A DNA stretch of 64,000 bases, taken from sequence record MZ574431.2. One strand, 5' to 3'. The position numbers and the translations under genes were made by a program. The notes beneath the pieces were generated by a model. That model ran no database searches, had not been told where the DNA came from, and saw nothing but the letters and a program-made list of their open reading frames with translations. The stretch's first letter is position 1; the number at the start of each line of letters is the position of its first letter. This document shows positions 42,241 to 64,000 of this stretch, one piece after another.

Positions 42241-42443
42241 GGGTGTGCCCTGAGCGGCGGCGCGCGACCTGTCGTGATCCCAGGTCGCGCGCGGGTCAAT
42301 GCAGGAGCCAGAGCAGGAACGCCAGCGTCAGCAGTGACCATCCGTTCAAAAGCTTCAGGCGCTCGCCTCCTTGGTTGCCGTGGCCGCTCGCCACGTTCAG
42401 ACCCTAGCGCATAAGAAAAGTGTTGCCAAGCCCAACAATGCAG

Positions 42444-42471
42444 TTGACAGCATAATTCTGCTATGCGACAA
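42444..42471 (+). promoter_or_regulatory. cassette promoter a
   Basis: TTGACA-GCAT-N9-ATGCGACAA. Confidence 0.8.
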
Positions 42472-42499
42472 AGGCTCATCGAAACGAGGAGCCGCCCAC

Positions 42500-42640
42500 A
42501 TGTGGGAAGTCAAGACCTTCAAGACCCGCCTCGCCAAGGAGGCCTGGATCGCCCGCAATGAGGCGCGTTACCAGATCGTCGAGATCGTGGTCGCCAACGC
42601 CTACGGCGTCGAATTCAAGCCCCTGCGACGCATCGGCTAG
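42500..42640 (+). CDS. 46-aa hypothetical protein
   Basis: RBS GAGGAG. Confidence 0.75.
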   Translation: MWEVKTFKTRLAKEAWIARNEARYQIVEIVVANAYGVEFKPLRRIG

Positions 42641-42659
42641 ACACGAAAGGAAAGCCCCC

Positions 42660-42851
42660 ATGATTCCGCCCGAGGTCCTCAACCCGCGCGACTACTGGAC
42701 CCCCATCGCCACGCGTCAGAAAGCCGAGGCCCTCGCCGAACGCTACGCGGTGGACGACTACGAGGCGCCCGGAACCTACACCGTCGAAGAAAAGGGCGCG
42801 GCCTTCGCCATCGCCTATTACGAAGACGGCGAATTCATCGCCTACGTCTAG
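42660..42851 (+). CDS. hypothetical protein
   Basis: RBS AAGGA. Confidence 0.75.
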   Translation: MIPPEVLNPRDYWTPIATRQKAEALAERYAVDDYEAPGTYTVEEKGAAFAIAYYEDGEFIAYV

Positions 42852-42856
42852 GCCAG

Positions 42857-42890
42857 ACCCGGCGCCCCCTCCCCAGGGCGCCGGGTTTTT
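42857..42890 (+). terminator. rho-independent terminator
   Basis: ACCCGGCGCCC/GGGCGCCGGGT + TTTT. Confidence 0.85.
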
Positions 42891-42904
42891 CCTGGCGCCC
42901 AGCC

Positions 42905-42978
42905 GTTAAGGTTAACCCGGCGTTAAGGTTAACGCCCCATTAGGGTTAACGCCGCGTTAGGGTTAATCGGCCATTAAC
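42905..42978. promoter_or_regulatory. tandem CtrA-type boxes, 17-bp period
   Basis: TTAA-gg-TTAA-N7-TTAA-gg-TTAA-N7-TTAG-gg-TTAA-N7-TTAG-gg-TTAA-N7-TTAA. Confidence 0.75.
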
Positions 42979-43008
42979 CCTCCAGGCGAAAATAGTGCAA
43001 GAAAGCGG

Positions 43009-43036
43009 TTGACTGCATATCAGGCCTATGCGACAA
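43009..43036 (+). promoter_or_regulatory. cassette promoter b
   Basis: TTGACT-GCAT-N9-ATGCGACAA. Confidence 0.8.
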
Positions 43037-43064
43037 GAGGGCGTCCCCAACGAGGAGGCCTCTC

Positions 43065-43700
43065 ATGGCTCTGCCGGAACACCTTTTCATCGCCGATCAC
43101 GGCGACCTCTACGATACCAGCGTCGAAGGCTGGAGCGCCAAGGCGCCCCTGCGCCGCGCCTATCGCGTCGCCCTGCCCAAAATCGAGAGCATGGGCCACG
43201 TCAAGGCCGCGCTGCGCTATGGCGACACGACTGACCTGGGCGGCTATCCGCTCTACTTCGTCACGCGCGATGGCGCGGCGCTGTCGTTCGAGAGCGCCCG
43301 CAAGATGCTCTATCAGATCGCGCTCGACTTCCAAGCCGACGCCTCGACCGGCTGGCGCATCGCCGCCGTCCAGATCAACTATGAGGACGGCGACTTGCGT
43401 TGCGATCATAGTGGCGAGCGCATCCCCTGCGCCTACAATGACCCCGAAGTCATGGCCTGGGCGAGCGGCTCCAACGTGTCGGGCTTCATGCCGGACAACG
43501 AGCCTTCCCATCATGCGACCTGGGAAGAGGCCCGCGACGCGCTCAAGCAAGACATCGAATTCGCGCGCGAGGCCTGCGAGGAGGGGAGCGAGGAGGACGG
43601 CCAATTCGCCCACGTCCTCGACGTCCTGGCCACGCTCCAAGAGGGCGCGGAATTCAACTACGGCGCCAACGGTTACCGTTGGTGGGTCGAAAAGCTCTAG
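43065..43700 (+). CDS. two-domain hypothetical phage protein
   Basis: GGYPLYFVTRDG...LRCDHSGERIPCAY; second domain GFMPDNEP. Confidence 0.85.
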   Translation: MALPEHLFIADHGDLYDTSVEGWSAKAPLRRAYRVALPKIESMGHVKAALRYGDTTDLGGYPLYFVTRDGAALSFESARKMLYQIALDFQADASTGWRIAAVQINYEDGDLRCDHSGERIPCAYNDPEVMAWASGSNVSGFMPDNEPSHHATWEEARDALKQDIEFAREACEEGSEEDGQFAHVLDVLATLQEGAEFNYGANGYRWWVEKL

Positions 43701-43714
43701 CGAAAGGAACGCCC

Positions 43715-43861
43715 ATGTTCATCCTGATTGTCGGCAATCCCGTCGATGGCTACGCCTATTATGGTCCCTTCCATGACCATGACGATGCGACCAACTATGC
43801 CGAGAACACCGGCACGGAAGGAAACCCTTGGTGGGTCGCGCCGCTTGAAGAGGCCGAGTAA
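43715..43861 (+). CDS. 48-aa hypothetical protein
   Basis: RBS AAGGA; GNPVDGYAYYGPF. Confidence 0.75.
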   Translation: MFILIVGNPVDGYAYYGPFHDHDDATNYAENTGTEGNPWWVAPLEEAE

Positions 43862-43898
43862 CCCCGCGATCTAAACCCCCTTTAAGAGGAGACCGCCC

Positions 43899-44201
43899 AT
43901 GGGCGCCGACTGTTTTGTGACCACCGCCAAGGGCAAGAACGCCAAGGAAGCGTTTCGCGACGCCGTGGACGAAGCCCAGTATAAATATGGCCATGGTGGC
44001 TATACCGGAACCATCGCCGAAAAGCACGAATTCGCCATGGACAAGGGTTTCAAGCCCGACCCCGCGAGCGAAAAGACGGTGATCGAGCAAGCCCAAGACT
44101 ACGCCTGGACCAAGGTCGAGGACGAAGACAAATATGGGCCTGCCGTGTGCCTGGACCTGGGCGAAGGTCAATTCCTGTTCTACGGCGTCGCCAAATGCTA
44201 G
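43899..44201 (+). CDS. hypothetical phage protein
   Basis: RBS GAGGAG; GHGGYTGTIAEK. Confidence 0.85.
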   Translation: MGADCFVTTAKGKNAKEAFRDAVDEAQYKYGHGGYTGTIAEKHEFAMDKGFKPDPASEKTVIEQAQDYAWTKVEDEDKYGPAVCLDLGEGQFLFYGVAKC

Positions 44202-44325
44202 GCGAGTCCAGGCCTTCGCGGCCTGGGCTTTGCCCTCCCGCCGGCGTTAACCTTAACGCGGCATTAGGGTTAACGCCGGCCGCCCAGGCTGTTAACCACC
44301 TTGCGAAAATAGTGCAAGAAAGCTG

Positions 44326-44353
44326 TTGACTGCATCAAAGCCCCATGCGACAA
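44326..44353 (+). promoter_or_regulatory. cassette promoter c
   Basis: TTGACT-GCAT-N9-ATGCGACAA. Confidence 0.8.
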
Positions 44354-44379
44354 GAGGTCATCGAAACGGGAGACACCCC

Positions 44380-44931
44380 ATGACCGACAAGACCACCGAC
44401 CTGCTCTATCCGCAAACCCTGCTGGCCCAGAACCTGCCGGGTCGCCCCGGCATGCTGCCGGCCTGGATCGTGCTGCGCGACATGGGGCCGAAATCCCATC
44501 ACCGCTACGTCACCCATATGCGGCTCGAATATCCGGCCATTGACGAGGCCGGCCCGAAATACGGCTTTGACCATGGCCATTATTTCGCCGACCTGCGCGA
44601 GGCGATCGAAGACTATAGCCAGCGCTGCGCCGATAAGGTCATGAGCGCCATGCGCCAAGCCTACGACGTACCGCGCGCGCCGGACAAGCCGCGCACCGTG
44701 ACCCTGCCGCTGGGCGTGGTCCAGGCCGCCTATGGCCTGATCGACGGCAACACCTTCGACCTCAACGCCGCCACCGAGGACAAGGACTTGGTGAACGCCA
44801 CCGAGGAGGCGCTTCGCGAGGCCCTGGGCTCCGATCGCTTTTTCCGCGATGTCGAAGCCGCCTCCAAGGCGCTCGCCGACGCCTACCGCGCCGCCAATCA
44901 ACCGCCGGCCGAGGAGACCGCCCATGGCTGA
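44380..44931 (+). CDS. hypothetical protein (MTDKTT...)
   Basis: leader ACGGGAGACACCCC-ATG. Confidence 0.85.
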   Translation: MTDKTTDLLYPQTLLAQNLPGRPGMLPAWIVLRDMGPKSHHRYVTHMRLEYPAIDEAGPKYGFDHGHYFADLREAIEDYSQRCADKVMSAMRQAYDVPRAPDKPRTVTLPLGVVQAAYGLIDGNTFDLNAATEDKDLVNATEEALREALGSDRFFRDVEAASKALADAYRAANQPPAEETAHG

Positions 44932-45439
44932 TTATGAGGCCTATGTGGTCTTGGACAAGCGCCGTCGCCATGTGGCGACGGTGACGTTCAAATTCACCGA
45001 AAGCCAAGTGACGGCCACCGTCGTCACGCCGTGGTCGGCGCCGGAGTCCCTGGCGCGCATCGCCAAGGTCAAGGGCTGGGTGATCGATCAAAACCGGCTC
45101 ATCGATCCTGCGACCGGCAAGGCCGTGGCCTATGTCTCCAAGGTCCAGGAGCAGACCGGCAAGGCCGGCGGCTACGGCTACGACAAGCGCGCCGCCTCGC
45201 TCGCCGGCCTCTATGTCGATGGCCACGAGATGGGCGACCATTCGTCCAGCCTCGGCGCCCCGAAAAAGCCCAAAGGCGCCGACCTCTACCCGGCCGACTT
45301 CACCCCGCCCAAGGGCTACCGGCTGGCCAACTACCAGAGCGCCACCGAGACCAAGGAAGCCGGCTATATGTCGTGTTTCCGCGAGCAAGGGCTGAACTAC
45401 CTGACCGCCCTGGGCTACGACGTTATCCAGGCGCTCTAA
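44924..45439 (+). CDS. hypothetical protein (MADYEA...)
   Basis: RBS GAGGAG; GKAGGYGYDK motif. Confidence 0.85.
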   Translation: MADYEAYVVLDKRRRHVATVTFKFTESQVTATVVTPWSAPESLARIAKVKGWVIDQNRLIDPATGKAVAYVSKVQEQTGKAGGYGYDKRAASLAGLYVDGHEMGDHSSSLGAPKKPKGADLYPADFTPPKGYRLANYQSATETKEAGYMSCFREQGLNYLTALGYDVIQAL

Positions 45440-45443
45440 GGCG

Positions 45444-45470
45444 AAGGCCCGCCACACCGGCGGGCTTTCT
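45444..45470 (+). terminator. rho-independent terminator
   Basis: GCCCGCC-ACACC-GGCGGGC-TTTCT. Confidence 0.75.
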
Positions 45471-45578
45471 GCTGGCCCTAGGCGTTAACCTTAACCGGGC
45501 GTTAGGGTTAACGGGGCGTAAACAAACATGGTTAACGCGGCCCATGGTCAGCCCAGGCGAAAAGGTGCAAGAAAGCTG

Positions 45579-45606
45579 TTGACAGCATTTCGACCCCATG
45601 CGACAA
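45579..45606 (+). promoter_or_regulatory. cassette promoter d
   Basis: TTGACA-GCAT-N9-ATGCGACAA. Confidence 0.8.
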
Positions 45607-45654
45607 GGGGGCTCCAAACAACGCCAACGCCCCAAGCGGGCAGGGAGACACCCC

Positions 45655-46236
45655 ATGGCCCTGGTCACCGAATCCTTCGCCGTCGACATCGACTGCACCC
45701 GCGCCCTGACCCCTGCCGAGCGGCGCGGTCTGGCCGCCGCCATCGCCCATCTGCTGGCCATCAACATCGATAAGGTCGAGCCCGAGCCGGGCGGCTACCT
45801 GACCGCCAATATCGGCCGCGTTCGCCCGGCCGGCATGACCGGCGAGGCCGGCCGCGAGGCGCGGATCAGGACCGAGGCCCTGACCAGCCTCGACCATGAC
45901 GCCCCGGTCGCCCTGACCCTGGAGTGTGGCGGCAGCGTCGATGTCATCGCCCGCTTCTACACCATGGCCGACGCCGAAACCTACCTCAACGAAAACCCGG
46001 AAATCGACCCGGTGTCGCTGAACCTGGGCTGCTACGGCATCGACGCCCCCTATGGCGTGGCCAGCGATGCCGACGCTGATAAGCTGCTCTACGACCTGGG
46101 CTATCGCCTGCACGCCACGGCCGGCGGCTCCTGGACCTTCACCGACCCGAAGGGCTATCTCTGGGACGGCGGCGCCAAGCGTGAGGCCGTGGTCATGATC
46201 GCCCTGGCGCAAGCCGCCCAAATCGAGGAGGCGTAA
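45655..46236 (+). CDS. hypothetical protein (MALVTES...)
   Basis: leader GGGAGACACCCC-ATG. Confidence 0.85.
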   Translation: MALVTESFAVDIDCTRALTPAERRGLAAAIAHLLAINIDKVEPEPGGYLTANIGRVRPAGMTGEAGREARIRTEALTSLDHDAPVALTLECGGSVDVIARFYTMADAETYLNENPEIDPVSLNLGCYGIDAPYGVASDADADKLLYDLGYRLHATAGGSWTFTDPKGYLWDGGAKREAVVMIALAQAAQIEEA

Positions 46237-46241
46237 ACGCC

Positions 46242-46667
46242 ATGACCCGCTATTCGATCATGGTCGAGGTCCAGACCCTCGCCGACAGCGAAACCCAGGC
46301 CCGCAAGGACGTTGAATTCGCCATCATTGAGGGCCGGTTCCCCGAGCACATGAATTGGATGGTTCGCCAGAGCGCCCCTTGCGCCGGCGAGACCGTCCAG
46401 GCCGATGACACCCCCACCCGCTGGGCGACCTTTGTCGGTCAAGCCTGGGTCCAGGGCCACAGCATGGAGGTGGACGACGCGCGCGTGCGCTACGGGATCA
46501 CCGACGCCGAATTCAACGCCAATGGCGGCGATGAGCCCGCCGACTTCGACGCCCTGGCCCAAGCCGCCCGCGCCCCGCAATGGGTCAAGGACTGGTCAGG
46601 CCCGTTCGACGTCTATATTTCCGACATCGAGGACGGGGAAGACCCCGAGGAAGTGCGCCAGCTATGA
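46242..46667 (+). CDS. acidic hypothetical protein
   Basis: RBS GGAGG; WSGPF motif. Confidence 0.85.
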   Translation: MTRYSIMVEVQTLADSETQARKDVEFAIIEGRFPEHMNWMVRQSAPCAGETVQADDTPTRWATFVGQAWVQGHSMEVDDARVRYGITDAEFNANGGDEPADFDALAQAARAPQWVKDWSGPFDVYISDIEDGEDPEEVRQL

Positions 46668-47215
46668 AACGCCGCCACAGCCTTTATTTGCTGGTGATCA
46701 ACACCGGCCCCCTGGTGATCCTCCAGGCGCCGGCCGATTTCCTGCGCTGGGACATCCACCGCGCCGCCATCCTGCGCATGATGCGCCGTGACCATGGCGT
46801 CAAGGCCAAGGACGTTCACGCCATCGAAGGCCTCGCCGGCTCGCCCTACGGCGCCGACGATGACCGCGAGGCCCTGGGCAAGCTCAAGGAAACCTTCGCG
46901 GGCCTGCGCCACGGCTTCGCCGCCTTCCACCTCTACACCTGGGACGGCAAGGACTATCAGCCCTTGCGCGAGCCCCTGACGCGCCCGCAAGGCCTTGTTC
47001 GCCTCCTAGGCCCCTATCCGCCGCCGAGCGGCGTCTATGGGCCGCACGCGCGCAAGACCGCCTCCCACGTCTATCAGGTCTTCAACGCCGATGGCGTCAA
47101 GCTGGTGGGCGGCTCGTTCGGCCCCGATCCTGACGCGGCCCTGGCCTATGCCCGCGCCCAAGCCGCCGCCAAGGGCTACCCTGACCCGGCGGTCGAGATC
47201 GTCACCCCGAATTAA
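46664..47215 (+). CDS. hypothetical protein (MKRRHS...)
   Basis: ATGA overlap. Confidence 0.75.
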   Translation: MKRRHSLYLLVINTGPLVILQAPADFLRWDIHRAAILRMMRRDHGVKAKDVHAIEGLAGSPYGADDDREALGKLKETFAGLRHGFAAFHLYTWDGKDYQPLREPLTRPQGLVRLLGPYPPPSGVYGPHARKTASHVYQVFNADGVKLVGGSFGPDPDAALAYARAQAAAKGYPDPAVEIVTPN

Positions 47216-47229
47216 ATGCAAGAAAACTG

Positions 47230-47257
47230 TTGACAGCCTTTCGGGGCCATGCGAGAA
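47230..47257 (+). promoter_or_regulatory. cassette promoter e (left arm GCCT)
   Basis: TTGACA-GCCT-N9-ATGCGAGAA. Confidence 0.7.
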
Positions 47258-47330
47258 CAAGGCTCAAGACGAGACAAGAGACAGCCAAGAGGAGGACATC
47301 ATGAAGTAGCGACAATCTGGAGCACACCTC

Positions 47331-47789
47331 ATGAATGTATTCGTCCGCGACGATCTTTTTCAAACCGATCTCGACGAGTGTGGTGACCCGCTTCTGGGTC
47401 GCGTCTTCTACGTCGTTGTCGAGGATCAGAACGGCGCCCGCATCGCCCACGATCGTTGTTTCTACGATCACCGGCGCGTCACCGATGAGGATGGCTTCGC
47501 CTTCTGGCAAGCCCTCTCTTACGAAGACGTCGCCGCCGAGGAAGCCAAGGCGAAAGCCCTGGCCGCCAAGATCGAGAGCCATCTGGCGCGGGGCGGCGCC
47601 CTGGACCCCGAGCACTGGCGAGACATCGACCCGTGCTATGGCTCCAAGGCCTATGCCGATCTCGACCGGTTCGGCTACTTCCTGGCCAAGGAACGGGCCG
47701 CCGACCGCGATCGAGGCGAGAACGTCCCTGACAGCCCTTGGGACGGCATCGCCGCCATGGTCGATGGCCCCAACTGGTTCGACCGCTGA
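47331..47789 (+). CDS. hypothetical phage protein
   Basis: RBS GGAG; preceded by in-frame ATG-AAG-TAG minigene. Confidence 0.85.
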   Translation: MNVFVRDDLFQTDLDECGDPLLGRVFYVVVEDQNGARIAHDRCFYDHRRVTDEDGFAFWQALSYEDVAAEEAKAKALAAKIESHLARGGALDPEHWRDIDPCYGSKAYADLDRFGYFLAKERAADRDRGENVPDSPWDGIAAMVDGPNWFDR

Positions 47790-47793
47790 TCTT

Positions 47794-47821
47794 AAGGCCT
47801 CGCCACCCGGCGGGGCCTTTT
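47794..47821 (+). terminator. rho-independent terminator
   Basis: AAGGCCTCGCC/GGCGGGGCCTT + TT. Confidence 0.75.
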
Positions 47822-47906
47822 GACCACCGCCTGGGCGTTAACCTTAACCGCCCGTTAGGGTTAACCCCGTCGCGCCCGGCGTTAACCCTGTGGCGCAAGA
47901 AAGCTG

Positions 47907-47934
47907 TTGACAGCATATCAGCCCCATGCGACAA
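47907..47934 (+). promoter_or_regulatory. cassette promoter f
   Basis: TTGACA-GCAT-N9-ATGCGACAA. Confidence 0.8.
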
Positions 47935-47962
47935 GAGCCCATCACAACGAAGGAGGTCGCCC

Positions 47963-48640
47963 ATGGGCGCCGGCATTTCAAAGACCGCACTGAACGCCCG
48001 CGTTCGGCGCCGCCTGCAAAACTTCGCCCACGCCAACGGTGGGACCTACGCCAAATATCAGGCCCAAGGCGTCAAGGACGGCCTGCCCTGGACCAAGGGC
48101 GTCAACGTACTTCGCGCCTCCAATGGCGAGACCTTTGGCCTTGACTGCATCGTCATCGGTCAGGGCGAGGCCGCCCGCCCCTACGGCTTTTCCGACCTCG
48201 ATAGCGCGATCCTGGCCTATCGCCTGGACGAGGCCGAAACCGGCGCGGCGATCTTCGCGGGCCAGCGCGGCGATTACAAGCGCTTGATCGGCCGGCGTAG
48301 CCCGTTCATCCAGACCTGGGGCTTTGACTATTGCCTCGCCCTGGAGTTGGACGACGGCGGGTTTACGCTCTTTCGCCCGAACGGGACCATGCTTCCCTTC
48401 CGGGGCGAGGCCGCCGACAGTTGGGCGCGTGAGCTTTGGGTTCTGTTGCCCAAGGTCTACCGCCGCCACGACGAGCGCAAGCCGCTCTATCGCAGCGAGG
48501 CGATCGCCCAAGCCCAGGCCCTGGACCTGTGGGCCAGCCAGTTCGCCGACGAGGATTGGACCACCGCCGGGGATGACTGGCGCGGCAAGCCCGACCACTA
48601 CAAAGGCCCCCGCAACCTGCCCCACGGCGACCCGCTCTAG
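47963..48640 (+). CDS. hypothetical protein (MGAGISK...)
   Basis: RBS AAGGAGG. Confidence 0.85.
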   Translation: MGAGISKTALNARVRRRLQNFAHANGGTYAKYQAQGVKDGLPWTKGVNVLRASNGETFGLDCIVIGQGEAARPYGFSDLDSAILAYRLDEAETGAAIFAGQRGDYKRLIGRRSPFIQTWGFDYCLALELDDGGFTLFRPNGTMLPFRGEAADSWARELWVLLPKVYRRHDERKPLYRSEAIAQAQALDLWASQFADEDWTTAGDDWRGKPDHYKGPRNLPHGDPL

Positions 48641-48740
48641 CCAGAGGATCACCCAGGCCCCGCGCCTGGGTTCGATCCTTGCCGCGTCCGTTAACCCTAA
48701 CACGGCGTTAAGGTTGACAAAAATAAATGCAAGAAAGCTG

Positions 48741-48768
48741 TTGACAGCATCGAAGCCACATGCGACAA
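48741..48768 (+). promoter_or_regulatory. cassette promoter g
   Basis: TTGACA-GCAT-N9-ATGCGACAA; leader nearly identical to c. Confidence 0.8.
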
Positions 48769-48794
48769 GAGGTCATCGAAACGGGAGACACCCC

Positions 48795-49295
48795 ATGAAC
48801 GACCAATATCCGCCCCTGACCGATGGCCAGCAAGCGGCCCTGGTCGCCTTCGCCGACCAGCATGGCGGCCTGGGCGAGGCCTGGAAGGAAGCCCTCGGCG
48901 ACGCCTGGAGGACGTGCAGCGAGCCCGAGGCCCTCAAGGCCGACCTGCGAACCATCCGCAACACCTATGGCCCCTCCTGGCTCTATGATGAATATGCCTG
49001 GGGCTGGCGCCCGACCCTGCCGGAGTGGGAGCGCGCCGGGCGCTGGACCGACACCCCGCCGCAGCCGACGCCGGGCAAGGCCCGCTGGAGCGCGTCGTTC
49101 GACCCGCCGGCCATCGGCGAGCGCGTCCGGGTGACCACCAACGGCCTGGGCTGGGCGAGGGTCACCGGCTACTTCGTCGAAGGCGACTGGCTGGGCGTGA
49201 TCGTCAAGCTTGAAGCCCCGGCCGACTGGTATGTCAAGCAGAACGGCGGCAACGTCCCCGGCCACAGCTTCGGAACCGAAATCGCCCTGGATTAA
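48795..49295 (+). CDS. hypothetical protein (MNDQYP...)
   Basis: leader ACGGGAGACACCCC-ATG; LRTIRNTYGPSWL. Confidence 0.85.
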   Translation: MNDQYPPLTDGQQAALVAFADQHGGLGEAWKEALGDAWRTCSEPEALKADLRTIRNTYGPSWLYDEYAWGWRPTLPEWERAGRWTDTPPQPTPGKARWSASFDPPAIGERVRVTTNGLGWARVTGYFVEGDWLGVIVKLEAPADWYVKQNGGNVPGHSFGTEIALD

Positions 49296-49451
49296 CCATC
49301 TGGGACTAGCCTGGGCGGCCCTGGCTGGGAAACCAGCCGGGGCGCAAGGCCGCCGGCCGGCGTTAAGGTTAACCTCTCTCGCCCGGCAGTTAAGGTTAAA
49401 CCCGCCGCCCAGGCCGTTAACCAAGGCGCCCAAGAAAGTGCAAGAAAGCTG

Positions 49452-49480
49452 TTGACAAGCATCTAGGCCACATGCGACAA
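49452..49480 (+). promoter_or_regulatory. cassette promoter h
   Basis: TTGACA-A-GCAT-N9-ATGCGACAA. Confidence 0.8.
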
Positions 49481-49507
49481 GAGGGCATCACAACGGGAGA
49501 CACCCCC

Positions 49508-56493: not shown

Positions 56494-56522
56494 GCCCGCC
56501 CTGACCCGGCGGGCCTTTCTTT
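56494..56522 (+). terminator. rho-independent terminator
   Basis: GGCCCGCC/GGCGGGCC + TTTCTTT. Confidence 0.8.
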
Positions 56523-56586
56523 CGCCGATCGCCGTTAACCCTAACCGCCCGTTAGGGTTAACGCCAAAGAAACTACAAGAAAGCTG

Positions 56587-56615
56587 TTGACACGCATAGC
56601 GGCCCTATGCGAGAA
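56587..56615 (+). promoter_or_regulatory. cassette promoter n
   Basis: TTGACA-CGCAT-N9-ATGCGAGAA. Confidence 0.8.
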
Positions 56616-56651
56616 CGTCCCTGCCGCATTGGCGGCCTGGAGACCTATGCC

Positions 56652-57230: not shown

Positions 57231-57233
57231 AGA

Positions 57234-57263
57234 AAAAGGCCCTGGCGAGCGCCGGGGCCTTTC
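57234..57263. terminator. bidirectional terminator
   Basis: AAAAAGGCCCTGGC-GAGC-GCCGGGGCCTTT. Confidence 0.75.
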
Positions 57264-57301
57264 GATCGTAAGCTGTGATTAACCCTAACGCCGCCTTAAG
57301 G

Positions 57302-57538
57302 TTAATCCTTGGCCGAGCGCCGATGCGGGTTCGAGCGAAGCCATGTGTCGGCTTCGGTGCGGGTCGAGAACGGCGCCCCGCCAATGCCCGTGGTTCCGTC
57401 ATCCCATTGGATCGTCCAGCCGACCTGAATGACTTCCCAGTCCTGGGAGACGCCGAACGGGATCGTAGCATGGATAGGGATACGGTTATGGGGCGGGCGC
57501 TTGAGTTGGCGCACCCGCGCCGGGATCACTTGCGGCAT
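57302..57538 (-). CDS. 78-aa hypothetical protein, only convincing minus-strand gene
   Basis: own promoter TTGACA-N16-TACTTT (57608-57581), RBS AGGA; GWTIQWDDGTTGIG..PFSTRTEA. Confidence 0.6.
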   Translation of the reverse strand: MPQVIPARVRQLKRPPHNRIPIHATIPFGVSQDWEVIQVGWTIQWDDGTTGIGGAPFSTRTEADTWLRSNPHRRSAKD

Positions 57539-57656
57539 TGGGATTTCCTGTAGGTCAAGCGGAGGCTTGGGCCATCGAGGAAAGTACCACGCCGCCGGCC
57601 CATGTCAAGAACGGCGCCACGGGTCAAGAATCGCGACTCAAGGCGCAAGAAAACTG

Positions 57657-57685
57657 TTGACACGCATCGCGCCGCCATGCGACAA
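57657..57685 (+). promoter_or_regulatory. cassette promoter o
   Basis: TTGACA-CGCAT-N9-ATGCGACAA. Confidence 0.8.
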
Positions 57686-57712
57686 AGGCTCAGCACAACA
57701 GGGACACCCGCC

Positions 57713-58156
57713 ATGAACCTCGAAGACTGGTTTTACCCTTCCTCCGACATCTCCAACTCTGACCAGACCATCGACTCCCGCGACGTCATCAAGCGGGTCG
57801 ATGAACTGCAAGCCGCTTTCGATGACGCCGAGATCGATCCTGATCAGGTGCTCGCCGACGACGAGCTAGACCTGGGCAAGGACGCCGAGGAAATCCGCGA
57901 CGCCGCCCAAGAGCTTAAGGCGCTCAAGGACTTCGCCGAGGAGGGCGAGAACTACGCCGCCGACTGGACGAGCGGCGAAACCCTGATCCGAGAAAGCTAT
58001 TTCGTCGAGTATGCCGAGCAGCTTTGCAAGGACATCGGCGACCTGCCCGACAACATCCCCGGCTATCTGGCCATTGACTGGGAAAAGACCGCCAACAACA
58101 TCAAGGCCGATTACTCCGAAATCGAGTTTGACGGCGTCACCTATCTGGTCCGCTAA
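57713..58156 (+). CDS. acidic ArdA-like antirestriction / DNA-mimic candidate
   Basis: about 40/147 D+E; C-terminal YLAIDWEKTANNIKADYSEIEFDGVTY resembles ArdA C-domain. Confidence 0.55.
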   Translation: MNLEDWFYPSSDISNSDQTIDSRDVIKRVDELQAAFDDAEIDPDQVLADDELDLGKDAEEIRDAAQELKALKDFAEEGENYAADWTSGETLIRESYFVEYAEQLCKDIGDLPDNIPGYLAIDWEKTANNIKADYSEIEFDGVTYLVR

Positions 58157-58163
58157 GGCGAGC

Positions 58164-58191
58164 GGCCGGCGTCCCCTGGGCGCCGGCCTTT
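58164..58191 (+). terminator. rho-independent terminator
   Basis: GGCCGGCG/CGCCGGCC + TTT. Confidence 0.65.
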
Positions 58192-58356: not shown

Positions 58357-58414
58357 GACAGTCTCGCCCAAGCGCCGCGCCATGTCAACCGATTTCTTAT
58401 GTGCAAGAAACCTG

Positions 58415-58442
58415 TTGACAGCATGTCCGCCCCATGCGAGAA
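58415..58442 (+). promoter_or_regulatory. cassette promoter p
   Basis: TTGACA-GCAT-N9-ATGCGAGAA. Confidence 0.8.
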
Positions 58443-58470
58443 AGCCTCATCATTCACTGGGAACGACCCC

Positions 58471-59130
58471 ATGCCCCGCACCGTCACCAAACAGGTCTAC
58501 AAGTTCACCGAACTGAGCGACAAGGCCAAAGCCAAGGCCGTCGAGTGGTATCGCGAGCTTGAGATGCAAGAAACCGGCTGGTGGGATTACGTCTATGAAG
58601 AGGCCGACCGCATCGCCGACGCCTTCGGGATCACGCTCAATCGCAGCGAAGCCGGCAAGCCCATGTCCGGCCCCGACATCCTGTTCAGCGGCTTCTACAG
58701 CCAAGGCGACGGCGCCTGTTTCCAAGGCCGCTACGCCAGCCCCCAAATCCCGGCCGTGGAGGGCTTCGCCGCCCTCGGGATCGAAGACGACAACCTCAAG
58801 GCCCTCGCCGTGCGCCTGGACGCTCTGAGCGCCAAGACCGGCGGACGCCTGACGACCGTGGTTCGCCACAGCGGTTACTATTATCACGAGTATTGCACCG
58901 CCTTCGAAACCGAACTGACCGACCCTGAAGACGGTTCGGACTTCGACCCCTACGCCTATGACGTGGAGGATGAAAAGGAACTGGTCGACATCCTGCGCCG
59001 GTTCATGAAGTGGATTTATCGTCAGCTTGAAGAGGCCGATGAGGCCCGCCTGTCTGACGAGACGATCACCGAAGCCCTCGCCGACTCCGACTACGAGTTT
59101 GAGGCCAGCGGGGCGCCGACCAGAGACTAG
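58471..59130 (+). CDS. acidic protein of a plasmid/ICE leading-region family (often labelled antitoxin-like)
   Basis: YKFTELSDKAKAKA, FSGFYSQGDGACF, IYRQLEE...SDETITEAL. Confidence 0.65.
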   Translation: MPRTVTKQVYKFTELSDKAKAKAVEWYRELEMQETGWWDYVYEEADRIADAFGITLNRSEAGKPMSGPDILFSGFYSQGDGACFQGRYASPQIPAVEGFAALGIEDDNLKALAVRLDALSAKTGGRLTTVVRHSGYYYHEYCTAFETELTDPEDGSDFDPYAYDVEDEKELVDILRRFMKWIYRQLEEADEARLSDETITEALADSDYEFEASGAPTRD

Positions 59131-59265
59131 GCCAAGACGGCGCCCGGCCCTCCCGCCGGGCGCCGATCGTGGTTAACGCCGTGTCGGGTTTTTGTAACCT
59201 TAACCCTCTGTTAAGGTTAATGAAAAAGGCCCTTTCCGTTAACCACGAATAATGCGAGAAAGCTG

Positions 59266-59294
59266 TTGACACGCATCGCAGCCCCATGCGACAA
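59266..59294 (+). promoter_or_regulatory. cassette promoter q
   Basis: TTGACA-CGCAT-N9-ATGCGACAA. Confidence 0.8.
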
Positions 59295-59320
59295 AGGGCC
59301 ATCGCAACGGGAGACACCCC

Positions 59321-59608
59321 ATGACGAAACAAGCCCCAAAGCGCCGCAAGCGCTACCCGCCCAAGAGCGACGCGGCCAAGGCCCGCGCCGCCGCCAAGAG
59401 CAAGGCGTTTTTCGCCCGCCACGCCCTCAAGGCCACCGAGGCGGCTATCGCCGCCATGGCGGCGGGCGATCAAAAGGCCGTCCAACGCCACGCCAAGGAC
59501 GCCCGGCGCCTCAATCGCTGGATGTGCCACAAGCGCGACATCGCCGCCGCCTTCAAGGCCGTGTTCGACATCCGCGCCGCCGCTCAAGCCCTGCGAACCG
59601 CCGCATGA
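59321..59608 (+). CDS. basic Ala-rich hypothetical protein
   Basis: leader ACGGGAGACACCCC-ATG. Confidence 0.8.
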   Translation: MTKQAPKRRKRYPPKSDAAKARAAAKSKAFFARHALKATEAAIAAMAAGDQKAVQRHAKDARRLNRWMCHKRDIAAAFKAVFDIRAAAQALRTAA

Positions 59609-59820
59609 TCCGCCGCCCCGCCCTCATGACCTGCATCGCCGGCGCCGCCCTCATCCTGTCGGGCGTGGCCGTTTCGGCCGCCAGCGCCCCGGAAAAGCGG
59701 GTTCTCGTCGGTCAATACTGCGACGGCGACCCCGTGCGCCTCTATGGCCTGGAGGACGGCGAGGAAGCCGCCCAAGCCTGCGCCATCGTCGAGGTCCACG
59801 CCCTGCCGAAAGGACTCTGA
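59605..59820 (+). CDS. small exported protein
   Basis: ATGA overlap; signal peptide ending AASA; Cys pair. Confidence 0.7.
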   Translation: MIRRPALMTCIAGAALILSGVAVSAASAPEKRVLVGQYCDGDPVRLYGLEDGEEAAQACAIVEVHALPKGL

Positions 59821-59822
59821 CC

Positions 59823-60281
59823 ATGCCCGGACATCCCGCCTTCGATCTTGATGAGCGCGAAGCCGCCGCCGTCATTGCCGGCCTGCGCCTGCTGCAACGC
59901 ATCGGCGTGCCGGTCGAGCTAGAAGACGTCGCCACCAACGGCGGCGCCTTCGACGTGCTCGATGACACCGCCATCGACGCGCTCTGCGAGCGCATCAATC
60001 TGGACCTGACCACCACGCCGCCGCCCGTGCTGATCGAGAGCCGCGAGGAGCCGGTTCGCGTCGAGGACCTCAAGGGCGGCATGATGTGCGACCTTGAGGG
60101 CGACATGTTCGCCGACAACGCCGGCCGTTACCCCGAATTCGAGTTCGCCTATGCCGTCGTTGTCGAGGTGCAGGTCAACCCGAAGGGCGAGCCGCCTGGA
60201 ACCGTGATCGTCGAGTTCGACAAGATCACCGTGGCCTTTCCCATCGGCCACACCCTGCCGACCATCAAGGACCCGCAATAA
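59823..60281 (+). CDS. hypothetical phage protein
   Basis: EAAAVIAGLRLLQ motif; RBS AAGGA. Confidence 0.8.
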   Translation: MPGHPAFDLDEREAAAVIAGLRLLQRIGVPVELEDVATNGGAFDVLDDTAIDALCERINLDLTTTPPPVLIESREEPVRVEDLKGGMMCDLEGDMFADNAGRYPEFEFAYAVVVEVQVNPKGEPPGTVIVEFDKITVAFPIGHTLPTIKDPQ

Positions 60282-60296
60282 AACGCAAGAAAGCTG

Positions 60297-60324
60297 TTGA
60301 CAGCATAATCAGCCTATGCGAGAA
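60297..60324 (+). promoter_or_regulatory. cassette promoter r
   Basis: TTGACA-GCAT-N9-ATGCGAGAA. Confidence 0.8.
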
Positions 60325-60362
60325 AGGATCGTCAAAGGCGATCCCGCCTCGTGGAGACACCC

Positions 60363-60707
60363 ATGAAACTGGTCAAGTCCAACATCATCGACAACCACCG
60401 CATGACGGCGCTGCGCAACTGCATCACCGTCGCCATCGAGCGCTTTCAAGAGCACGTCGATGAGATGAAGCCGGCCGCCGAGCAATACGAGGCCGCCGAC
60501 GACGCGGGCAAGAAGGCCCTGGAAGCGGCCACGCCCATGGTTCACCCTCGCGTCTATCGCCAGCTTTCCGACCAGTTCGAGGGCCAGATCGAAGAAGCCC
60601 GCAAGCTGCTGGACTGGCTGGACGGCGACGCCTACCAAGACGCCTCGGGCGAGTTCCCCGAAGGCACCGATTTCGTCGTCGTCGCCGGCCTCGTCCGCGA
60701 CTACTGA
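60363..60707 (+). CDS. hypothetical protein (MKLVKS...)
   Basis: leader GGAGACACCC-ATG. Confidence 0.85.
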   Translation: MKLVKSNIIDNHRMTALRNCITVAIERFQEHVDEMKPAAEQYEAADDAGKKALEAATPMVHPRVYRQLSDQFEGQIEEARKLLDWLDGDAYQDASGEFPEGTDFVVVAGLVRDY

Positions 60708-60714
60708 CCAAGCC

Positions 60715-60742
60715 AAGGCCCGCCTCACCGGCGGGCCTTTTC
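60715..60742 (+). terminator. rho-independent terminator
   Basis: AAGGCCCGCC-TCACC-GGCGGGCCTT-TT. Confidence 0.8.
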
Positions 60743-60827
60743 CTCGCCAGCCCACGTTAACCTTAACGCCGCGTTAGGGTTAACGGCGGGCCGGTTTTCG
60801 TTAACCAAAGAAAATGCAAGAAACCTG

Positions 60828-60856
60828 TTGACTGACATCTTGGTTCTATGCGACAA
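60828..60856 (+). promoter_or_regulatory. cassette promoter s (left arm ACAT)
   Basis: TTGACT-G-ACAT-N9-ATGCGACAA. Confidence 0.75.
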
Positions 60857-60883
60857 AGGCCCATCACCAACGGGAACGCTCCC

Positions 60884-61282
60884 ATGACCCAAGACCTGAC
60901 CACCGAAGAACGCAACGCCAAGCTCGCCGAAATGGCCGATCACTGGCGCGAGCAACTCAAGGTCGCCCAGGCTCGCCTTGACATGACCGTGCTGGTCGGC
61001 AAGGGCTTTATCTGCGCCCTGGACCGCGATCAATCGATGGCGATCCGCGCCGATGGTCCCGACCGCTATCGCCTGTGGCCGGTGTCGGCGCACCTGACCC
61101 ACCTCCTCCACTTCACCAAGCTTGACGCCATGCGGGTCGCCGCCCATTGGAACGCGCGCCTCCCCGACGACAAGCAAGACCTGCGAGTGAGCGCCATCCA
61201 CTACCGCGACGCGCTCAAAACCTTCGTGGAAGTGGCCAAGTCGCAAATCGCCTGGATCGAAGGCGGCTGCAAGGCGGCCTGA
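60884..61282 (+). CDS. hypothetical protein (MTQDLT...)
   Basis: leader AACGGGAACGCTCCC-ATG. Confidence 0.8.
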   Translation: MTQDLTTEERNAKLAEMADHWREQLKVAQARLDMTVLVGKGFICALDRDQSMAIRADGPDRYRLWPVSAHLTHLLHFTKLDAMRVAAHWNARLPDDKQDLRVSAIHYRDALKTFVEVAKSQIAWIEGGCKAA

Positions 61283-61441
61283 TCTTGACGCCCTCCGGCT
61301 CCGGCCGGAGGGTTAATTTTTGGCCAGCCTGCATTAACCTTAACGCGCAACCGTTCTCAGGTTAACCTTAACGTGAAAACGGTTGCAGGTTAACCTTAAC
61401 CCCGCCCGCCCAGGCCTTAACCAAACCTCGCGAGAAAACTG

Positions 61442-61470
61442 TTGACTCGCATCGAGGCCCCATGCGACAA
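61442..61470 (+). promoter_or_regulatory. cassette promoter t
   Basis: TTGACT-CGCAT-N9-ATGCGACAA. Confidence 0.8.
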
Positions 61471-61498
61471 GGTGACATCGACAACCGGAGGCCCTTCC

Positions 61499-62155
61499 AT
61501 GGCCAGCCCTGAAGACATCGCCACCGTCCAAGCCGCCGCCGTCTCTTTCGACCTGGAAGCGTGGGAAGCGGAAAAAGGCGAGTATGCCGAGGCTCATTGG
61601 CGTTATCTGAACTACGCCTTTGAAATCGAGACCTATTCGCACATGTTCAGCCAAGCCGAACGCGACGCCGCGCGCCGTCTCATCGAAGAATATGAGACCG
61701 CCCAGACCGACCATCAAGGCACCTATGTTGACGAGAGCGCCGCGCTCATCGCCAGCGCCGACGCCTTCACCCGCCAATATATCGCCAGCGCCCTTTGGAC
61801 CGGCGTCGAGTTGCCCTATGGCGACGACCGCGCCGACAGCGGCGGCGCCTATGACCTCGAAGAGGATTCGATCATCCCCGCCACGCTGCGCGACATGATC
61901 GAAGATTGCGCCACCTTCCAACGCGACAACGCCGACACCCTGGCCAAGGCCTATGAGTCGGACGTGTATATTCAAGGCGAGCGCTACAACGCCAGCAACG
62001 CGGGGCACGATTTTTGGCTGACCCGCAACGGCCATGGCGCGGGCTTTTGGGATCGCGGCCTAGAAGAGGTCGGCGAGGCCCTGACCAAGGCCTGCAAGGC
62101 GTTCGGGGAATACTATCTCGCCATGAGCGACAACGGCGAAATCTCCAAGATGTGA
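61499..62155 (+). CDS. acidic hypothetical phage protein
   Basis: NAGHDFWLTRNGHGAGFWDRG motif; RBS GGAGG. Confidence 0.85.
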   Translation: MASPEDIATVQAAAVSFDLEAWEAEKGEYAEAHWRYLNYAFEIETYSHMFSQAERDAARRLIEEYETAQTDHQGTYVDESAALIASADAFTRQYIASALWTGVELPYGDDRADSGGAYDLEEDSIIPATLRDMIEDCATFQRDNADTLAKAYESDVYIQGERYNASNAGHDFWLTRNGHGAGFWDRGLEEVGEALTKACKAFGEYYLAMSDNGEISKM

Positions 62156-62160
62156 CGATC

Positions 62161-62189
62161 AAGGCCCGCGCTTGACGCGGGCCTTTTTC
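62161..62189 (+). terminator. rho-independent terminator
   Basis: AAGGCCCGCG-CTTGA-CGCGGGCCTT-TTT. Confidence 0.85.
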
Positions 62190-62256
62190 TGCCCCGTCCG
62201 GGTTAACCTTAACGCCGGGCGACTTTCCGTTAACCGAAGAAAATGCAAGAAAGCTG

Positions 62257-62285
62257 TTGACTCGCATCTTCGTTATATGCGAACT
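62257..62285 (+). promoter_or_regulatory. cassette promoter u
   Basis: TTGACT-CGCAT-N9-ATGCGA. Confidence 0.75.
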
Positions 62286-62315
62286 TGACGACATCGGAAA
62301 TCAAGGAACGCCGAC

Positions 62316-62690
62316 ATGGCTAAGACCGAAACCGTCGACCTCGCCCTGGTCATGCTCGATGAGAGCAAGGCCGCCAAGGGCGCCCCGCGCGCCTTCACGT
62401 TCGGCGAAGTCCGCGAGGCCTTCACCGACGCGCACGCCTTGACGTTGCTTCAAGCGCGCTTGCGCCAGATCAACGAAAACGAGTGCAACGGCTATCGCGA
62501 CGAAACCGCCGAACGCCTGGACGCGCGCCGCGAGGAGCGCGCTAAGGCCGCCGTCGCCGAGATCGCCAAGCGCTACGGCCTGACCTTCCATTTCAACGGC
62601 GATCCGCGCGGGTCGGCGCTGAAGCTGAAGACGCCTCACACCGGCCGTTATAACGGCTTTGGCGGCCGTGAGGATGGTTGGGCCGTCTAG
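62316..62690 (+). CDS. hypothetical phage protein
   Basis: FNGDPRGSALKL motif; RBS AAGGA. Confidence 0.85.
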   Translation: MAKTETVDLALVMLDESKAAKGAPRAFTFGEVREAFTDAHALTLLQARLRQINENECNGYRDETAERLDARREERAKAAVAEIAKRYGLTFHFNGDPRGSALKLKTPHTGRYNGFGGREDGWAV

Positions 62691-62758
62691 GCCCAACTTG
62701 ACGCCGCTTCACCCCCTGTAACGCGTCCCCTTCCACCCCTAGGCCTTGGAGACACACA

Positions 62759-62968
62759 ATGGCCCGCACTGCCGATCACACCACCGCCGACCGTACCCGC
62801 GCCCCTCGCGACCTCGCGCCGTGGGAACTCGACGCCGAACGCCGCCGCGCGCGCAAGGCTTCCAAGTCCTGGCGCGCCGAACGCAAGGGCGTGCGCTCGA
62901 TGGGCGACTATGCCCAGGGCGACGACATGCGCACCCTCGCCGATGGGGCCGATTTCTACCCGAACTAG
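62759..62968 (+). CDS. small basic hypothetical protein
   Basis: RBS GGAG. Confidence 0.65.
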   Translation: MARTADHTTADRTRAPRDLAPWELDAERRRARKASKSWRAERKGVRSMGDYAQGDDMRTLADGADFYPN

Positions 62969-63016
62969 GGCGCGCCCTGGCCAGCGAAAAAAAGTGCCGT
63001 CAACGCAAGAAAGGCG

Positions 63017-63044
63017 TTGACGGCATAATCGCCATATGCGACAA
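63017..63044 (+). promoter_or_regulatory. cassette promoter v
   Basis: TTGACG-GCAT-N9-ATGCGACAA. Confidence 0.8.
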
Positions 63045-63070
63045 AGGCTCATCGGCAACGGAGACACGCC

Positions 63071-63265
63071 ATGACCTTCCACCACAACCTGATGAGCAAG
63101 CTGGACGCGGCCCAAATGGCGGGCGAAATGACCTACGCCCAACACGCCGACATGCGCGCCACGCTGCGGGCCTCCAACATGCGCGGTCAAGTCTTCACCT
63201 CGATGGATGAACTGCGCAAGGCCTGCAAGGGCGCCGGTCGCGACTTCCAAGGCCGGTTCGCCTAA
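63071..63265 (+). CDS. 64-aa hypothetical protein (MTFHHNLMSKLDAA...)
   Basis: leader ACGGAGACACGCC-ATG; duplicated at 63957. Confidence 0.8.
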   Translation: MTFHHNLMSKLDAAQMAGEMTYAQHADMRATLRASNMRGQVFTSMDELRKACKGAGRDFQGRFA

Positions 63266-63283
63266 GACCCCCTCCCCTGAGAG

Positions 63284-63310
63284 GCCCGCCCTAGAGGCGG
63301 GCTTTTTCTT
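63284..63310 (+). terminator. rho-independent terminator
   Basis: GCCCGCC-CTAGA-GGCGGGC-TTTTTCTT. Confidence 0.85.
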
Positions 63311-63443
63311 GGCCGTTAGCCTACCGTTAAGGTTAACCCCCAGGCCCTCTGGGGTTAACCCTAACGCCGCGTTAAGGTTAACCCCGGCGGCCCAGGCCTT
63401 AACCATGACAAGGAAAAAAGATCGCTTTCCTGCGAGAAAGCTG

Positions 63444-63471
63444 TTGACCGCATAAAGGCGATATGCGACAA
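63444..63471 (+). promoter_or_regulatory. cassette promoter w
   Basis: TTGACC-GCAT-N9-ATGCGACAA. Confidence 0.8.
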
Positions 63472-63495
63472 AGGGTCATCAACGGAGCAAGTCCA

Positions 63496-63666
63496 ATGTC
63501 CTTCCGCCTCGCCCTTACCGAAGACGCCCGCTTCACCGCCGCCCGTGGCGCGGTCCGCACCGTCCGCGAGCAAGCCCGCCCGGCGCCGCACAAGGACATT
63601 GACGGCAAGGCCCTGCTGGCGCCCGCCTCGGCGCTGGACCGCATCCGCGCCGTTCTCGGGAACTGA
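63496..63666 (+). CDS. 56-aa hypothetical protein (MSFRLAL...)
   Basis: RBS GGAG. Confidence 0.7.
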   Translation: MSFRLALTEDARFTAARGAVRTVREQARPAPHKDIDGKALLAPASALDRIRAVLGN

Positions 63667-63669
63667 GTC

Positions 63670-63861
63670 ATGAAGGTCATCGCGCACTATGCCAACGGCC
63701 TGCAACGGGTCATCCCCTGCGAGACCTCGCAAGAGGCTGTGGCCGCGATCAAGGCGGCTCTGACCTATGATCGCGCCGCCAAGTTCACGCTTGACAAGCG
63801 CCTTGCCTCGGCGATCCCGACCCGCGCCGCCTCCGAACGGGTTTGGCTGTTGAGCGCGTGA
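63670..63861 (+). CDS. 63-aa hypothetical protein
   Basis: coupled to the previous gene. Confidence 0.7.
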   Translation: MKVIAHYANGLQRVIPCETSQEAVAAIKAALTYDRAAKFTLDKRLASAIPTRAASERVWLLSA

Positions 63862-63900
63862 GGGCGATCGAAAAAAGATCGCCTCACCGCAAAAAACCTG

Positions 63901-63929
63901 TTGACTCGCATAAGGCCCCTATGCGATAA
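63901..63929 (+). promoter_or_regulatory. cassette promoter x
   Basis: TTGACT-CGCAT-N9-ATGCGATAA. Confidence 0.8.
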
Positions 63930-63956
63930 AAGGTCATCGGCAACGGAGACACGCCA

Positions 63957-64000
63957 TGACCTTCCACCACACCATGATGAGCAAGCTGGACGCGGCGATG
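63957..64000 (+). CDS. partial CDS, paralogue of 63071..63265
   Basis: MTFHHTMMSKLDAAM with identical leader. Confidence 0.8.

Follow-up and report, generated by a model that had tools for sequence, protein, structure and literature searches.

The terminal repeat of Caulobacter phage J4

The DNA considered here is a stretch of 64,000 nt (the window) from sequence record MZ574431.2, the 312,338-bp genome of Caulobacter phage J4, which the record taxonomy places in the genus Bertelyvirus, Dolichocephalovirinae. Window position x corresponds to record position x + 248,000, and window positions are used below. A direct terminal repeat of 24.7 kb is annotated in the record at 287,615-312,338 (window 39,615-64,338), and the right repeat contains an array of 24 promoter-headed units, all on the plus strand, which occupies 42432-64000 and continues to 64,338, 338 nt past the window end. 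The annotation thus places the array in the terminal repeat, as had been guessed in an earlier note made from the sequence alone. The array is probably a set of units that share one promoter, many of them preceded by CtrA-type sites, and whose repeated modules also recombine the units, in a manner resembling the promoter-early stem-loop (PeSL) cassettes of T4-type phages. Its relatives include six near-identical phages (99.4-100%), BL47 (99.9% where aligned) and CcrSC and CcrBL9 (~80% identity). A literature search found no paper on J4 or BL47, or on Bertelyvirus repeats.

A common promoter block

Generic promoter and terminator scans were replaced by targeted scans with controls. A scan of both strands of the window for TTGAC and TGCGA separated by 12-18 nt found 24 promoter blocks between 42,444 and 63,926, all on the plus strand and with spacings of 15-16 nt, and none on the minus strand. 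These blocks match one-to-one the units, lettered a to x, that the earlier note had distinguished, each of which contains one to five genes. In 23-24 of the 24 units TTGAC(A) is preceded by an A-rich tract and the 12-mer GCAAGAAAGCTG, which together may resemble a UP-type element. When up to two mismatches are allowed, this 12-mer has 31 matches against 4.8 expected, all on the plus strand and 24 of them in the array region; it is carried by 23 of the blocks, the exception being that of unit a. The hyphen between the 12-mer and TTGAC in the promoter motif of the earlier note does not stand for a base: read literally, with one base added there, the pattern has no true match, since the 12-mer directly abuts TTGAC. 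Downstream, 17-18 nt separate TTGACA from the hexamer GACAA(A/G), which is preceded by TG-n in the extended -10 form, and a conserved CATC ~7 nt beyond this hexamer is a likely transcription start. A leader of ~20 nt with GGAG precedes the ATG, and 18 of the 24 units keep a distance of 52-59 nt between TTGAC and ATG.

Parts of these blocks recur in distant units, much as the earlier note had reported. Units c and g share 40 identical nt between promoter and ATG, m and q share 41 (36 bp had been noted), and i and w share 37 upstream; the terminators of k and m are 88% identical over 74 nt. Units v and x carry the same gene, in that gp535 and gp538 are paralogues with 83% identity, and have 38 identical nt in common.

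Every promoter of the repeat also contains, in its spacer, a dyad GCAT-N9-ATGC that the earlier note had missed. The dyad is exact in 22 of 24 blocks in J4, 23 of 23 in CcrSC and 22 of 23 in CcrBL9, and in each genome 9-15 promoters have arms extended to 5-6 bp; the 9-nt interior nearly always differs between blocks. Its distance to the -10 is fixed, and the 1-nt variation in length falls between TTGAC and GCAT. As RNA it would form a poor hairpin (-2 to -7.5 kcal/mol, z mostly above -1.5) and therefore looks like a protein-binding dyad, which probably binds a dimeric regulator of the whole set of units.

Only Bertelyvirus genomes contain the promoter block, at 22-34 places in each. Searches of IMG/VR for the promoter with its dyad found it only in CcrSC and CcrBL9 and nothing further, and across 596 Gb of bacterial genomes they returned 34 singletons against ~35 estimated by chance, none of them in a Caulobacter record. 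Four promoters outside the repeat (1326, 11606, 22920 and 26435) have the 12-mer and TTGACA with a different -10 and no dyad, and may form a second class of phage promoters.

TTAA palindromes and CtrA

A 27-nt TTAA palindrome has 15 matches in the window against 0 expected, and the pattern YTAA-N7-TTAR has 18 against 0.11 expected, all within the repeat. The repeat part of the window (39,615-64,000) holds 101 of its 113 TTAA copies, and the remainder of the window is not depleted of TTAA (12 vs 16). None of the CtrA-type sites lies in an annotated gene. A TTAA cluster is found within 130 nt upstream of 15 promoters. The constant element in J4 is a convergent TTAACC...GGTTAA, one inner half-site of which is usually degenerate, accompanied by one more TTAACC, 25-50 nt ahead of the -35. 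The other nine promoters can be termed internal: none has a TTAA site within 130 nt, and a terminator upstream is often missing as well. The suggestion of the earlier note that every new gene would inherit identical regulation is too strong, because these nine of the 24 are without TTAA sites.

The terminal repeats of phiCbK-like ('LPEG') phages, CcrSC and CcrBL9 included, are enriched in predicted CtrA sites, and CtrA binds and activates two repeat promoters of phiCbK (gp005/gp018), with binding and regulation tests confined to phiCbK, vB_BsubS-Delta and Cp1R7A-A1 (Mascolo 2022, PMC9437464). The CcrSC table of that study lists 17-mers of the form CTTAAC-N5-GTTAAG located 85-135 nt upstream of repeat genes, and the predicted site with the top score in the published table lies at the CcrSC place equivalent to J4 41845-42120. 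This 17-mer is the core of what the earlier note had described as a 29-bp palindrome; the note had not recognised that its palindrome and its lone TTAACC are the predicted CtrA-site class already published for this phage group. The classical CtrA-activated layout, in which a TTAA box overlaps or replaces the -35, is not found in J4, where TTGAC is intact and the closest TTAA lies 25-50 nt ahead of it. The CcrRogue repeat has its own repeated promoter, with a TTAA box at the -35 position in the classical layout.

An orphan palindrome (57279-57305) follows the terminator of unit n with no promoter block near it, and adjoins gp524c, the only minus-strand gene of the array.

Terminators and the complete module

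Strict GC hairpins followed by a T-run number 14 on the plus strand against 1.15 expected, and 12 of the 14 are located 71-140 nt upstream of the next -35. A generic terminator scan of the window gave chance level because the T-runs are short. The region had been described in the earlier note as a chain of one repeating module; promoters, palindromes and hairpins are indeed all far above chance, but terminator, palindrome and promoter occur together as a complete module in only about half of the units (about 12-15 of 24).

Rearrangements in related phages

BL47 differs from J4 by three rearrangements, two of which have their junction inside the promoter/leader module. In a 1429-bp tandem duplication of units s and t, u-type sequence gives way to s-type sequence over ~25 nt around the -35. 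An 884/885-bp unit comprising v and w is present in five copies, 100% identical over ~3.5 kb; at the interior junction an x-type promoter is followed by the leader and first codons, 38 nt that do not differ between v and x, and then by a v-type gene. The BL47 arrays are known from one assembly.

Gene content differs between the lineages of J4, CcrSC and CcrBL9. Against CcrSC and CcrBL9, the gene-family map shows whole units transposed, namely a (gp496-497), c (gp501 onwards, against b) and e (gp506, against d), together with lineage-specific units (f in J4 and one in CcrBL9) and one replacement (v). Homology of the transposed cassettes begins 0-50 nt upstream of the -35. Gene order is otherwise largely collinear between J4 and these two phages; the fixed order that the earlier note had named as grounds for abandoning its proposal is not observed, as whole cassettes have been transposed.

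The individual units

Unit a (42432-42885) has a promoter at 42432-42472 with an atypical upstream 12-mer, followed by gp496-gp497 and a terminator at 42858-42885, and is transposed whole in CcrSC and CcrBL9. Unit b (42906-44229) begins with four overlapping TTAA boxes (42906-42977), and has its promoter at 42997-43037, gp498-gp500 and a terminator at 44205-44229. Unit c (44247-45466) comprises a palindrome (44247-44273), promoter (44314-44354), gp501-gp502 and terminator (45446-45466), while d (45485-47215), with palindrome 45485-45511, promoter 45567-45607 and gp503-gp505, has no terminator. The promoter of e (47218-47258; unit 47218-47819) stands right behind the gp505 stop and is followed by a long leader, gp506 and a terminator at 47794-47819. 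Unit f (47838-48682) has a palindrome (47838-47864), a promoter (47895-47935), gp507, found in the J4 lineage only, and a hairpin at 48640-48682; a string near 48670 that resembles a T-loop does not belong to a tRNA, and Rfam gives no match.

Unit g (48691-49350) carries a palindrome (48691-48717), promoter (48729-48769), gp508 and a hairpin without a T-run (49309-49350). In h (49350-50397), 27-nt direct TTAA repeats (49350-49420) precede the promoter (49440-49481), the broken gene gp509 and a terminator (50372-50397). The clearest complete module belongs to i (50419-51908), in which the palindrome (50419-50445) and a single TTAACCAT (50463-50470) lie ahead of the promoter (50479-50519) and gp510-gp511. 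The internal promoter of j (51893-51933; unit 51893-52818) overlaps the end of gp511 and is followed by gp512-gp514 and a terminator at 52799-52818. Five genes, gp515-gp519, make up k (52838-55068), with palindrome 52838-52864 and promoter 52897-52938. The duplicated segment of this unit in BL47 (J4 54559-55012; BL47 14973-15879) places exactly two genes in tandem, joined as stop codon, one base, start codon. Unit l (55198-55559) has a promoter without TTAA sites (55198-55238), gp520 and a terminator at 55540-55559.

Palindrome, promoter and terminator are again combined in m (55579-56516; palindrome 55579-55605, promoter 55666-55707, gp521-gp522, terminator 56492-56516) and in n (56535-57305; palindrome 56535-56561, promoter 56575-56616, gp523, terminator 57237-57260), which ends with the orphan palindrome. 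In o (57645-58188) the promoter (57645-57686) lies inside the annotated start of gp525, and the ArdA-like acidic protein (57716-58156) is followed by a terminator at 58164-58188. Unit p (58403-59183) consists of a promoter (58403-58443), gp526 and hairpins at 59131-59183; q (59194-60281) has a palindrome (59194-59220), promoter (59254-59295) and gp527-gp529. Four bases past the gp529 stop begins the promoter of r (60285-60325; unit 60285-60739), ahead of gp530 and a terminator at 60715-60739.

Unit s (60757-61313), with palindrome 60757-60783, promoter 60816-60857, gp531 and terminator 61290-61313, is the left partner of the 1429-bp junction in BL47. Unit t (61334-62186) has 28-nt direct TTAA repeats (61334-61400), a promoter (61430-61471), gp532, which is also present in the CcrRogue repeat, and a terminator (62160-62186). 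Unit u (62198-62968) contains TTAA sites, a promoter (62245-62286) and gp533-gp534, its segment 62198-62282 being the right partner of the same junction. Unit v (63005-63304; promoter 63005-63045, gp535, terminator 63282-63304) is the start of the 884-bp unit amplified in BL47. Unit w (63355-63861) has a palindrome (63355-63381), promoter (63432-63472) and gp536-gp537, and x (63889-64000; promoter 63889-63930, gp538) is cut at the window end. The 38 nt from 63934 are identical to 63049-63086 and form the crossover zone of the BL47 array.

Gene products

Of the 48 proteins encoded by the repeat, only five have a match in Pfam or among the named PHROGs and 43 have none; half have an isoelectric point below 5. 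The protein gp498 matches a small PHROG labelled DNA ligase. The match of gp525 to Pfam ArdA is weak (22-23.5 bits, below the cut-off of 27), and in its family of 314 relatives similarly weak ArdA matches were seen in 23 of 49 sampled. In Foldseek, a confident gp525 model (predicted local distance difference test score, pLDDT, 92) retrieved a solved ArdA in second to third rank, at a non-significant E of about 1 and template modelling (TM) scores of 0.26-0.30. Against PDB sequences gp525 has no match, and its profile does not retrieve ArdA there either. The net charge of gp525 is -28. The gene is annotated at 57602-58156, with a start upstream of promoter o; the module agrees with an in-frame ATG at 57716, which lies 59 nt from the -35 and is also where the ArdA-like match starts. 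Another product, gp520 (55266-55532; 88 aa, net charge -27), is as acidic as known DNA-mimic proteins and has no family match. Compared with the intact 284-aa gene of BL47, gp509, which is served by promoter h (promoter and gene 49440-50361), has one frameshift and no substitutions, and the frameshift could be real or a sequencing error. Early timing of the array genes and a content devoted to host takeover or anti-defence, as proposed in the earlier note, can only be conjectured, the sole hint being the one weakly ArdA-like protein.

The left end of the repeat

At its left end (39615-40117), the repeat begins inside the large terminase gene, 62 nt short of the stop, as reported for phiCbK. 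Its first gene, gp491, lies outside the array at the left end and encodes an HslV-family peptidase (phrog_1040, 8e-35). Near this end (40753-40810) a 23-nt repeat with GGGACCCTGG is present, to which the GGGGACCC repeats before the first gene of the CcrRogue repeat (~870-990) are similar. A 1.3-kb gene-poor gap contains, at 41560-41830, about six iteron-like direct repeats of TTGACGC, 3-4 nt and GCGCATTT, with a period of 22-28 nt, which look similar to the TTGAC...GCAT half of the promoter dyad. At 41845-42120, ~20 GTTAAC/GGTTAA sites are packed in 16/27/29-nt periodic arrays with no adjacent promoter block.

Comparison with known systems

The precedent cited in the earlier note is sound: PeSLs are promoter-early stem-loop cassettes of T4-type phages (Arbiol 2010, PMC2839356; Comeau 2014, PMC4122927). 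Both they and the J4 modules are repeated promoter/terminator composites of ~100 nt that combine a sigma-70-like promoter, preceded at its -35 by an A/T-rich tract, with a Shine-Dalgarno sequence and a start codon; both cluster where the genome is plastic and the genes are mostly orphans; and in both, close relatives have indel or replacement junctions inside the motifs, the single-gene indels of J4 excepted. The phage family, host and motif sequence are, however, unrelated, J4 being outside the T4 superfamily. The stem-loop of a PeSL is embedded in the promoter, whereas the terminator hairpin of J4 is separate and lies 70-140 nt upstream, and the dyad within the J4 promoter is too weak for a stem-loop. 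The J4 module also differs in including CtrA-type host-regulator sites, and its units all have one orientation, inside a terminal repeat.

The CtrA-site-rich repeats described previously (PMC9437464) belong to the same phage group and have the same site cores, located between genes and upstream of genes of unassigned function, with site turnover after rearrangements. That study scored single 17-mers, and not a composite module, common promoter, dyad or module-mediated crossovers. The CtrA-dependent promoters of phiCbK and CcrRogue (Poindextervirus) are likewise repeated modules ahead of small repeat genes, but they have the TTAA box at the -35, a different -10, no TTGAC...TGCGA and no GCAT-N9-ATGC, whereas the J4 boxes are upstream of a full -35. 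Integron cassette arrays are also chains of small exchangeable gene units; unlike these, the J4 region has no integrase or attC-type site, has a promoter in each unit, and would exchange units by general homology. In coliphage T5, the pre-early region lies in a long non-permuted direct terminal repeat and consists of small genes transcribed by the host polymerase. The repeat type has been likened to that of T5 (Gill 2012, PMC3556154); both repeats are long, direct and dense in small genes, although no sequence relation was found.

The CtrA-site signature of these repeats (PMC9437464) and PeSL-type shuffling in T4-type phages were thus already known. What is new here is the module as a composite, a dyad specific to the repeat, a promoter design that contrasts with that of phiCbK, and crossovers resolved to the base, among them a five-fold amplification.

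Alternative explanations

Several observations weigh against reading the array as CtrA-linked units recombined through their modules. On the regulatory side, a generic sigma-70 scan of the window detects none of the 24 blocks, because their -10 is without the usual final T. Strict TTAA-N7-TTAA boxes were dropped as a module element, as only five copies are present. Moreover, the CtrA-type sites of J4 sit 25-110 nt upstream of a complete -35 and do not replace it as in phiCbK and CcrRogue, so that the published activation may not transfer. In this genus the palindromes might instead bind a phage protein, act as cruciforms or insulators after terminators, or serve as replication or packaging signals. 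Such a role would suit their position far upstream and the degenerate inner half-site of most copies, as well as the dense block of the same motif at 41845-42120, in the gene-poor gap beside the iteron-like repeats. It is nevertheless unlikely: the published CcrSC matrix scan scores these cores as CtrA sites, repeat-concentrated sites are a shared signature of pilus- or flagellum-dependent phages of CtrA-bearing hosts, and comparable phiCbK sites are bound by CtrA (PMC9437464). The dyad, for its part, may not be an operator and may belong to the recognition of this promoter class by the host polymerase, a possibility to be taken seriously if not a probable one. Its right arm holds the extended -10 TG (overlapping TG-n-hexamer), its left arm abuts the -35, its weak RNA folding means that it is no stem-loop, and the pattern is not above chance in any host genome. 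Polymerase recognition accords less well with a left arm spaced constantly from the -10 and not from the -35, with arms that can extend to 5-6 bp around a free 9-nt spacer, and with the non-repeat promoters that have the same upstream element and -35 and do without the dyad.

On the recombinational side, the third rearrangement of BL47, a 454-bp duplication of gp518-gp519, has 1-2 nt of microhomology and lies outside any module, and gains and losses of ~10 single genes inside units end at gene boundaries. The left ends of homology blocks do favour the modules, lying at -60 to +5 relative to a -35 in 8 of 23 and 8 of 21 cases in the comparisons with CcrSC and CcrBL9, against 7% expected (P about 1e-4), but this enrichment is an upper bound because conserved motifs attract alignment ends. 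Homogenisation of modules within the genome is not significant for J4 under a fair control (p 0.18 and 0.52), and exchange between modules is therefore episodic, not pervasive; the count of cases in which a paralogue was better than the orthologue (15 of 22) was rejected as a biased signal of homogenisation. The collinear order, the gene-boundary indels, the microhomology junction and the missing homogenisation would all be expected if the modules were alike solely because every unit needs one and the same strong promoter under common control, with illegitimate recombination and selection producing the changes and the coincidence with modules incidental. There seems little chance that regulation is the whole explanation, given that two base-resolved junctions lie within stretches common to both partner modules and that every transposed cassette starts just upstream of its own -35, at a distance of 0-28 nt. 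The identical copies of the BL47 array could also be an assembly error, 100% identity over ~3.5 kb being a pattern that assemblers can create, and if the large differences of BL47 were all artefacts of a repeat-rich region, recent recombination would lose its support. This is improbable, as the junctions are specific chimeras with their own substitutions, and cassettes have been transposed independently in CcrSC and CcrBL9. The recombinational cassette platform of the earlier note is accordingly supported in part, by the module crossovers and moved units, with breakpoints inside modules in two of the three BL47 events and at the transposed cassettes, but not as a general rule, in view of the ~10 indels, the one microhomology junction, the collinear order and the lack of homogenisation.

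A possible mechanism and its implications

In the favoured reading, of recombining units under one promoter design, the 24 units of the array would be co-oriented, for the most part insulated from one another, and all transcribed by the host RNA polymerase from the same promoter, with ~14 of them ending in putative intrinsic terminators. Host CtrA probably modulates the 15 units preceded by TTAACC...GGTTAA palindromes, because the palindrome core is a CtrA-type box, and a dimeric regulator that binds the spacer dyad probably controls the whole set. Since the modules (45-140 nt) are repeated in direct orientation, they would also act as portable homology. Unequal crossing-over or exchange between them could duplicate, amplify and transpose whole units with their own promoter retained, as with PeSLs, and such shuffling may be advantageous to the phage.

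A bolder and rather doubtful extension would see the terminal repeat as a cell-cycle-gated 'gene accordion', in which units are amplified or moved within a few generations under one dyad regulator, while CtrA is both read and titrated. The shared promoter and leader sequence would allow a single unit to be amplified, as in the five identical BL47 copies, or moved; GCAT-N9-ATGC, as a dedicated operator unique to this promoter class, would let one regulator switch the whole set; and more than 30 CtrA-type palindromes per genome (in two repeat copies) would read and titrate the host master cell-cycle regulator.

If the favoured reading is correct, promoter-mediated modular shuffling, documented in T4-type phages, would extend to an unrelated family of giant siphophages, and the shuffling mechanism would there be tied to a host cell-cycle regulator. 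With its natural junctions resolved to the base, its recent five-fold amplification of a cassette and its clean promoter class bearing an operator-like dyad, the region would make early-gene control and accessory-gene turnover in Caulobacter phages directly testable.

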